Assembly (NCBI GenBank): GCA_964035545.1
Contig: OZ037768.1
Coordinates: forward strand, 868,001 to 932,000
Reading direction: 5' to 3'
DNA length: 64,000 bases
DNA from: Bugula neritina
Taxonomy: Eukaryota; Animalia; Bryozoa
The position numbers and the translations under genes were made by a program. A model generated the notes under the pieces. That model searched no databases, was not told where the DNA came from, and saw nothing but the letters and a program-made list of their open reading frames with translations. Numbering within the stretch: position 1 is the stretch's first letter; each line of letters begins with the position of its first letter. Shown piece by piece: positions 47,501 through 50,500 of the stretch.

Positions 47501-50500
47501 CTACCTGCTGCATATTACACTTGGTGTCTGCTGCATATTACACTCGGTGTCTTCTGTATATCTAACTTTCATTGGCTGGCTATCAATTTCATATCATAAA
47601 ATGTAACTAAACTTTTCAAAATATTAAAATTGACTTTTCTGTAATGGAGAATTAGTAAATGATAAACTTAAAAATTAACCAAATAAAATTTTAGAGTTTT
47701 AAAATGCTTTTTAAAAATAACCTTTTGTGCCTTCTCAAGCTTTTACTGCAGACGAAGACATAACTAGCACTGTCGTCTGCTAGTCAACTGCAGACGTCAC
47801 ACAACCAGCACTATTTTCACTTGAATCATTTTTCAGCTTTGCAGTCTTGTACCCTGTTTACTCCAGGTAATCACTATGTCAAGTGTGATCTACAGTTATT
47901 GTTTGTGTCCCTAAACCACACTTATTTTAGTTCACTTATTTGATGATCTTAGTTGTTATGTGACATTTATTGGACATTGAGATTAAAAGAAACTAAGCAC
48001 GATTGTCACAGTATTTAGTCTTGATAATCTTAATATTGTAAAGTTTTTGTGAAGAAATTAAATCAGTTTTTATTTTGATTAAAGTTTAGTAAAATTTATG
48101 AAAATTATTGTCTGGTTTTCAAGACGCCATACTTTTAACCTCTCATTGTCTGATGTCCTTAATGTGGGTTCAACTCTGTATGAATATCAATCATTAGTGA
48201 TTATATATTTTGTAATTGTGTTTCAATCAAGGTAATTCAATAAGTCTTTCCTCAACATAAAAACCTCTTCGTTAATATAAATGTTATGTAATTAGGCTAG
48301 TTGGGGCAGTCATATTTACAAACATCTTTCATTTAATAAAGTTATTTTTATGCAAGTGGATGTTTTCAACTACCTATCTAATAACTGGAAAAACTTGATA
48401 GCTGATTTTGAGGTTAAGAAAAACTTTAAACTAATGATATAAGTGGAAACCAGTGTGTTAGATGAATTTGGTTGTCCAGTATGATATATGTTTGTGTCTA
48501 ACACCTTAGTCTGTTCTTTGTAGTTGGTCATTAGTTTAACTTTAGTGTTGTCAAACCGTAGACATTGGAAAGTATAGTTTGTCAAATTTGCTTGTGTTAC
48601 ATTGATGATCAAATAAACTTTTGTTACAACCCTATAAGAGAAGGGAGAGTGCTAAGTTGAACTATAAAAATAATATCAACACTGATTCTATATTTGATTA
48701 TTTATTCTATTCTATGAACTCCAAAAGTTTCCATCTAGGAAATAACCAGAATTTTTTTGTTTCTATGTGATTTAGTTATATTTAAAAGCTTACATATATG
48801 TTAATAAATTTAATAAAAATTATTTCTGTTGTTGACCTTGATGCGTCTTATTTTGTAAAGTAAAGTTACACCCCTTTTGATCATAATACTTACTAGTCAG
48901 TTACTACTAGCTAGTTAATTACTATCTAGTAACTAGCTAGTAACTAAATAACTACTAGTTGATAAAGTTCTGATAGTCACTTACTAGCTAGTAACTTACT
49001 AGTTAGTAACTTACTAGTTAGTAACTTACTAGTTAGTAACTTACTAGTTAGTAACTAACTAGAAACATTCGTCTTTCCTGCCTACAACTCTACTACACCT
49101 GACTATTCCAAACACTACATGTTATACTATGCTATGGCCGCAAACTTAGGCTGCTTTTTATGTTGCCTTTAATATTTGGTTGACCCTCGGACAGCTTCCT
49201 GCTGATATTGTTTATATGTACTTTTGGTGTTTCAGCTTTGCAGTTTTATACCCTGTTTACTCCAGGTAACCGAGTTACAAGACACATAATTATGATTTAT
49301 ATCTGTGGTGTCACTGTGACCATTGGACATTGAGAGTATTTGAGCATATTTTACTAAACAAATACTATTAGATAATAAAGAGCTCTTGCTAGAAAAGATG
49401 CCTTAAGGCGATAGGTGTATGAATTTATCACTGGTTGTTACAAAAATGACTCTCTTAAGAAAAAGTGATTTCTACCAGGCTAATTGGTTAGCAAAAGAAC
49501 AAAACACAACCATTTTTCTTACTCATCACCATTTATAGAGGTTGAAGTGAAGATTTTCAAATGTTTAGAAGTACCTGGATGAACCCAGTGTGCTCTGATT
49601 GGCTGAGCGTTTTGGCGAATGTGATTATGCAAACCAATGATATTTTTGTACCCAGCTCTTTGTAAGTGCAGATGCTTTGTAAAAAATTATGAATAAAAAC
49701 AAAAATTTTTGCTTGCAAGTGTTAAAACATTCTCACTGGAATCTGCTTTTCTTCACAGTATTGACGAGCAAATTTTTTATAAAAAGCTTTTTCACTGAAA
49801 CACCTCAATTTGGAAAGACTGTAGTCATGCATATGGGACCATATGACCGCAGTGTGACATGTGACCACAGTGTGACGTAGGAAAAAACGAGTGCGGACAG
49901 AAAGAAATTGGCAAATTTCGTTTACTTGACTCTCAATGTTCATCATCACTGTGAGCCATGAAGTACTTGAGTAGTACTTAAGTATTACTTGAGTATCACT
50001 TAAATTGATCCAATGATTTCCTTCCAATATTATTATATGATATATTATAATACATCTTCACAATGCTCTTACTAGTAGAGAACATTTTTCAGTACAACAA
50101 GAAGTAAAGTGAAAGCAAATTGATATAATATTGCAGTAATAAAATTTCGCTCTTTATTAGTAATTTATACTAGAATTGCTGATCATTCTAAGTGGAACTG
50201 ATTAGACATGCTTTGAACTACATCCTACCTGGTTTTATTGGAAGCAAATCAAGTTTAAGTGGTAGTTATCTCCCCTAAACTCTATCTTTAGTTATCTTGT
50301 TATTTAATGTTGTTGAAGCTGTGAGCTCATCTAATGTATACACGGTTAGCTGCTGAGCACTAATTTCCTGTTGTTACTAAACCACGTGGTGTTGTTTTCC
50401 CCTGCTTTTCCTATCACTCTTATATATTCACATTGTGAAGACAACTCCAGTCTTACAGCATACAACTTTGTCTTTCATCTCTGATCAGCTGTTCTCCCAT

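Follow-up and report, generated by a model that had tools for sequence, protein, structure and literature searches.

The Cav1 gene of Bugula neritina carries, between the exons for IIIS3 and IIIS4, two tandem homologous microexons of 30 nt in the same phase (A and B). A selector-like block stands beside each of them, and both blocks are complementary to one overlapping docking-like site further downstream. On balance we favor the explanation that the two selectors compete for pairing with the single dock, an arrangement that would have been born by partial duplication of a hairpin. The layout is like that of a docking/selector system. We do not class the locus as a member, since the one-and-only-one rule is broken by a splice form that skips all of these exons and the exclusion of one exon by the other is something we infer. 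An earlier note on this DNA had proposed docking/selector control; the layout and the constraint on the three pairing cores support it in part, but the one-and-only-one rule does not.

Host Gene and Lineages Compared

The window, that is, the whole 64,000-nt stretch analyzed, contains on its + strand the L-type calcium channel gene Cav1, as identified by protein searches run exon by exon and not on a joined spliced model. The nearest matches of the domain III S3 and S4 exons are L-type alpha-1 channels, and the cluster matched by the IIS6 exon includes KAF6026628.1, a Bugula neritina protein named as an L-type alpha subunit. Exact look-ups of the window ORFs gave no match. The constitutive exons on either side of the region are IIIS3 (46040-46146, + strand), which ends in phase 2 and is covered by RNA contigs, and IIIS4 (52738-52837, + strand), whose junction letters appear as loose ends in RNA contigs. 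The searches and the intron position support the location claimed earlier, the IIIS3-S4 linker of a calcium channel, and identify the channel as Cav1.

The introns of the window genome and of the assembly behind KAF6026628.1 diverge by ~10%, so the two genomes appear to represent different lineages of the B. neritina complex. The second lineage (lineage 2) was represented by two independent assemblies, L027 (JGI) and L029 (GCA_010799875.2).

Twin Microexons in a Four-Microexon Cluster

Microexons A (47837-47866) and B (49236-49265), both on the + strand and designated Y-type, are flanked by the canonical sites TTTCAG (5') and GTAA (3'). They are identical at 28 of 30 positions, with both mismatches at third codon positions, and lie in phase 2-2 between the end of IIIS3 (46146) and the start of IIIS4 (52738). 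Either exon inserts 10 residues, FAVLYPVYS plus the Ser of the split codon. A splice-site model trained on the Cav1 gene itself ranked B second and A fourth among 215 in-frame candidates. The non-homologous candidate exon 51723-51758 scored higher; in L027 its donor is gone and a stop has arisen, whereas A and B retain both donor and open frame. An argument from weak 5' splice sites was dropped because a non-G at +5 is frequent in the Cav1 gene.

Outside the selector block the flanks of A and B align no better than shuffled sequence, and only the exon, its splice sites and the selector are still alike between the two paralogous units. Despite these saturated flanks the exons show zero amino-acid differences in the window lineage. 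Two copies only of this exon type exist in the 216-Mb genome. The presence of both units in two independent assemblies (L027, L029) rules out an assembly artefact. The two 30-nt exons, their two synonymous differences and their diverged introns are thus as first described. The further claims that the peptides are identical, and that the copies would differ only in regulation or copy number, hold for the window lineage but fail in lineage 2, where A is unchanged and B carries an Ala>Thr replacement.

The picture of a twin pair was correct but incomplete, as the pair belongs to a cluster of four microexons in the order IIIS3, X, A, B, dock, Z, IIIS4. Microexon X (46640-46681, + strand; 42 nt) encodes a 14-residue insert, is present in KAF6026628.1, and is spliced in RNA. 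Microexon Z (50942-50986, + strand; 45 nt) is in frame, in phase 2-2, and encodes a CY...C peptide with two cysteines. The lengths of all four microexons are divisible by 3 and their phase is the same, so that no combination of them disrupts the frame or triggers decay.

The Z cysteines are kept across species while the other residues vary (window 50942-50986; L010 2149-2181; L015 13629-13661), and they could form a small disulfide loop outside voltage sensor III. Shortly 3' of X there is a strong hairpin (46859-46912), with TGCATG at 46918; in lineage 2 this region has expanded into a short-unit repeat. Inverted repeats of 16 bp with TAGCA/TGCTA arms also lie 3' of X in L003 (4391-4513) and L010 (1340-1472). 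Elsewhere in the gene the domain IV S1-S2 exon is duplicated (55249-55359 and 55725-55836), a pair that is likely mutually exclusive, and there are two alternative domain IV S4 exons (59123-59247 and 59496-59623) whose voltage-sensor sequences differ.

RNA Evidence for the Cluster

Four RNA contig sets from three studies, all from lineage 2, were mapped to 45990-51300. Such contigs drop rare forms, and the samples were probably whole-colony. X is joined to IIIS3 in runs X1, X2 and X4, and to IIIS4 in runs X2 and X4. In run X1 the X donor is joined to the acceptor at 50942, after which the contig reads into the intron with Z donor use unseen. A direct IIIS3-IIIS4 junction, the skip form, is present in run X5. 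The X-only form (X2, X4) and the skip form (X5) contain neither A nor B, and mRNAs of this gene thus do not each carry exactly one exon of the array. Because the skip form exists, the locus is not a one-and-only-one cluster; the strictest rule that A and B could follow is that an mRNA has one of them or none.

Neither A nor B was found in the four contig sets, in which no contig lies on 47592-48837 or 49194-49905. One mapped contig record seems to contain no more than 30 nt of X, so exon length alone is probably not the reason for this blank. A and B are therefore rare, cell-restricted, or silent.

In all four runs RNA contigs cover the start of the intron (46147-47480), stopping near 47364-47480, with an A-run loose end at 47364. 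The KAF6026628.1 model likewise ends in this intron, 3' of exon X. Possible explanations are an intronic 3' end, with a channel truncated past IIIS3, or internal priming.

Two Selector-Like Blocks Share One Docking-Like Site

Selector-like block A (47959-47982, + strand) consists of a 12-nt core (47971-47982) and a short TGTGAC block, and selector-like block B (49306-49337, + strand) of a 14-nt core (49324-49337) and an upstream extension. The two flanks have a 14-nt block in common (47969-47982 = 49322-49335), with TGTGAC upstream of each; 300 shuffles of these 300-nt flanks yielded common words of at most 13 nt. The docking-like site (49929-49958, + strand) is an inverted copy of the selector block and, when reverse-complemented, aligns with both blocks across some 30-40 nt. 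The pairing described in the earlier note was reproduced: with the same bases of its core (49929-49942) the dock forms a 12-bp duplex with A and a 14-bp duplex with B, each containing one G-U, and the antisense-strand duplexes are weaker by about 4 kcal/mol.

A helix of at least 12 bp with the common 14-mer was obtained in 7 of 600 trials with shuffled intron, a figure that is optimistic, given that 7 of 48 control blocks from real introns reached p<=0.02. In the 216-Mb genome the 14-mer pattern has a single occurrence on each strand, both in this Cav1 intron, which rules out a repeat or transposon origin. No shared upstream (bidirectional) element of A and B was found, the longest common word there being 9 nt. 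With the dock as query against the whole intron, selector B gave the best duplex (-34.9) and selector A came 8th (-20.1), so that the expectation of finding both selectors as top matches held for B but not for A. A GTGAC/CACAGTG-rich stretch at 49853-49877, 70 nt upstream of the dock, is complementary to the 3' half of the dock and could be a local competitor for it.

We computed folds over two distances. When the 760 nt from B to the dock are folded, the B core pairs with the dock with a probability near 1, whether at 20 or 37 C and whichever lineage is used; in the window lineage the 3' half of the dock is taken up by the beginning of exon B (49235-49244) rather than by the stretch at 49853-49877. 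An equilibrium fold of the 2.2 kb from A to the dock rarely contains either helix (0.07 and 0.10, and about 0 in lineage 2), and blocking B did not raise A-dock pairing. Long equilibrium folds are unreliable for such distant contacts, and this one lends competition no support. With opening costs included, net pairing is -5.5 kcal/mol for A and -9.6 kcal/mol for B. Selector A, weaker by about 4 kcal/mol and also more distant, would thus need help, for which we propose co-transcriptional timing, proteins, or a 13-bp helix nested around the A-dock helix. The last would join 47954-47966 to a possible A-only second partner at 51268-51280 (+ strand), which is unchanged in L029 and missing in L027; this helix is a post hoc finding and may be a chance match.

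Constraint and Helix History between Lineages

Both assemblies of lineage 2 contain X, A, B, Z, both selectors and the dock. Conservation of selectors and dock, on which the docking/selector proposal depended, is present: the three cores show 0 substitutions in 40 nt against an intron background of 10.6% (p about 0.01, in a comparison of two lineages of one species complex only). Selector block A lies inside a 42-nt run unchanged between lineages, and the A unit (47820-47995) has 6 changes in 176 nt (p=4e-4), being conserved over about 170 nt, well past the pairing block. For the B unit conservation above background is non-significant (p=0.13). The third-position letters specific to A and to B are alike in both lineages, showing that there has been no gene conversion since the lineages split.

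Five changes between the lineages fall within a 7-bp extension beside the B core. When the selector B of the window is paired with the dock of lineage 2, all 7 extension pairs are Watson-Crick; this suggests that an older helix had 14+7 bp (21 bp) and one bulge. Two derived changes, both one-sided, keep the pairing as G-U, and three break pairs. The separate TGTGAC block gains a fifth pair with the lineage-2 dock. Comparison of lineage 2 with the window revealed no two-sided compensatory changes in selectors or dock, the cores being invariant. Read together, the changes indicate an old, real inverted match, its core held and its B-specific extension loosened in both lineages, rather than proof of covariation.

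Single-Copy Relatives

The relatives were taken as bryozoans on the grounds of exon identity, common intron positions and common microexons. Homologues of X (39-42 nt) and Y (33-36 nt) are present in four other species (L003, L006/L015/L019, L007 and L010). Those of Z are 33 nt long in L006, L015, L019 and L010 and 45 nt long in L027 and L029. Judged by sequence, homology of Y is clear for L015 and L007, plausible for L003, and mainly positional for L010. The frame and splice sites of the Y-type exons are intact in all relatives examined. All four species have a single Y exon, and the entire intron is seen in two of them (L010; L015 and L019); L032 and L033 end before it. Since the relatives with the full intron carry one Y, the A/B pair is a lineage-specific duplication within the Bugula line.

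We compared the first 150 nt after Y with the rest of the Y-Z intron, with strict scoring and real-sequence controls. A stem beyond shuffles was found in L010 (2/500), L003 (16/500) and the window (8/500), but not in L015 (58/500). Because control segments did so as well in 9 of 61 cases (Fisher p=0.02), the stems 3' of Y in the single-copy relatives are suggestive only. They are like the Bugula stem in position and unlike it in sequence, and no homologue of the selectors or dock is recognizable in the relatives. Short TTGAGAG and CATTGGAC matches in the relatives were set aside, since they are inconsistent in position and, in one species, polymorphic.

Two further features of these contigs were noted. 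From 5776-5930 onward the L003 contig crosses a CT repeat into an unrelated same-strand coiled-coil gene, probably through a metagenome misjoin, and its Z region is absent. L010 has, at 293-644, an additional intron within the IIIS1-S2 exon that is found neither in Bugula nor in the other relatives.

Competing Pairing and Its Rivals

In the model that we favor, the ancestral linker would have had an optional Y exon followed by an intronic stem whose 3' arm lay before Z. A tandem duplication in the Bugula lineage would have copied Y and the 5' arm only, leaving two arm copies, selectors A and B, to compete for the single 3' arm, the dock. Pairing would activate the exon upstream of the paired selector. 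Thus, A-dock pairing would loop out B and shorten the path from the A donor, B-dock pairing would activate B and leave A unactivated, and an unpaired dock would lead to X, to Z or to skipping. An mRNA would then carry no more than one Y-type insert, and only a minority of transcripts or a few cell types would have it. Several results stand against competing pairing: no RNA contig in four runs from three studies contains A or B, the changes in the helix extension include three that break pairs and none that is two-sided, A is the weaker and more distant selector, and the 2.2-kb fold rarely contains either helix.

The shared dock would also be the simplest explanation for the retention of both copies. 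A copy whose exon was lost while its selector remained would still take up the dock and so reduce overall inclusion, a cost through which both units could be held without different peptides. It is a rather doubtful proposition, which we put forward tentatively, that a working switch between microexons for the same peptide is kept by such entrenchment and not by protein diversity.

Some results for selector A also fit with formation of the B-dock stem only, the block after A being a protein-binding splicing element retained by descent, its match to the dock a by-product, and competition nonexistent. The rank of A among the partners of the dock, its weaker net pairing, the failure of an opened B to raise A-dock pairing in the long fold, and the conservation of the A unit far beyond the pairing block would all be expected. 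We nevertheless consider this unlikely, because what A and B have in common is exactly the sequence that pairs with the dock, and this also covers the separate TGTGAC block, with its fifth pair in lineage 2. Relics are a different matter: one or both copies could be silent and alike through local gene conversion, with a stem that is neutral or repressive. Such a fate would agree with the missing RNA support, with the lack of significant constraint on the B unit and its missense change in lineage 2, and with the independent weakening of the helix extension in both lineages. It conflicts with the copy-specific third-position letters that both lineages preserve, with the integrity of Y-type exons in every relative examined, and with the decay of the candidate exon 51723-51758 in L027 next to an A and a B that have not decayed. 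We give the relic explanation very little credence.

Joint inclusion of A and B is not physically barred. The A-B intron of 1.37 kb rules out steric exclusion, the exon lengths rule out exclusion through the frame, and B-dock pairing does not loop out A. The exons might therefore be non-exclusive, with the stem tuning combinations (a 20-residue insert from A plus B, or a Y-Z joint) into a ladder of linker lengths; the X-to-Z joint seen in RNA is a combination of this sort, and the stem could bring a Y donor near the Z acceptor. The four contig sets contain no A-B, A-Z or B-Z joint, however, A-dock pairing would remove B, and co-inclusion alone leaves unexplained why both copies have the same arm. 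A ladder of this kind is in our view quite improbable, and competing pairing remains the explanation that we prefer.

Comparison with Known Systems

Downstream docks serve the exon clusters of insect 14-3-3zeta, Mhc, MRP1 and Dscam1 exons 4 and 9 (PMC6071210, PMC4691838). The Bugula locus resembles these in having tandem homologous exons, a selector after each, and one complementary site downstream, and in that pairing of the upstream selector would loop out the later exon. A free dock could leave Z, the alternative exon lying past it, as the default, as in the insect clusters. In contrast to those clusters, the Bugula exons are 30-nt, optional, and specify the same or nearly the same peptide; splicing also uses a skip form and the non-homologous X; pairing is weaker for the distal selector; and the host is a bryozoan.

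In the partial stem-loop duplication model of Ivanov and Pervouchine (2018), duplication of an exon with one hairpin arm yields two selectors and one dock (PMC6071210). As that model would have it, flank similarity in Bugula is confined to the exon and the arm. The model leaves unexplained how the upstream exon is silenced under downstream pairing, a gap common to Bugula (PMC6071210). Beyond the model, Bugula has single-copy relatives as a before-state; we infer the ancestral hairpin, the stems of the relatives not being homologous in sequence. In human ATE1, two elements at exons 7a and 7b compete for one, as tested experimentally (PMC7797038). Two exons and two elements against one are features of both genes; unlike A and B, ATE1 7a and 7b are full-size and divergent, and one of them is always included.

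A cassette exon, 24a, occupies the same linker in vertebrate Cav2.1 (SSTR) and Cav2.2 (SFMG) (PMC11580629). The four-residue insert shifts activation of human Cav2.1, and the Cav2.2 insert is reported without clear effect (PMC11580629). The Bugula gene differs in being Cav1 and in having four exons of 30-45 nt against one 12-nt cassette, with no sequence homology. By analogy with exon 24a in human Cav2.1, an insert in the Bugula linker may shift gating.

Our literature search, with most subscription journals outside it, returned arthropod and vertebrate docking/selector cases only, none from a bryozoan or other lophotrochozoan, and no account of the present cluster of microexons.

Significance

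The analysis brings to light a set of IIIS3-S4 microexons (X, Y, Z) that is conserved in bryozoan Cav1. Docking/selector splicing has so far been shown almost only in arthropods and in a few human genes, and its origin through duplication of an exon with one arm rests so far on genome-wide statistics. In Bugula the duplicate, the footprint of the selector and the single-copy relatives are all visible, within a 2-kb stretch that a single minigene could hold, and two silent bases distinguish A from B. If competing pairing is true, the locus would offer a natural example on which the origin of mutually exclusive splicing by partial hairpin duplication could be tested directly. It would also be the first lophotrochozoan docking/selector system found in the literature searched, sitting within an undescribed cluster of four microexons that remodels the voltage-sensor loop of Cav1.
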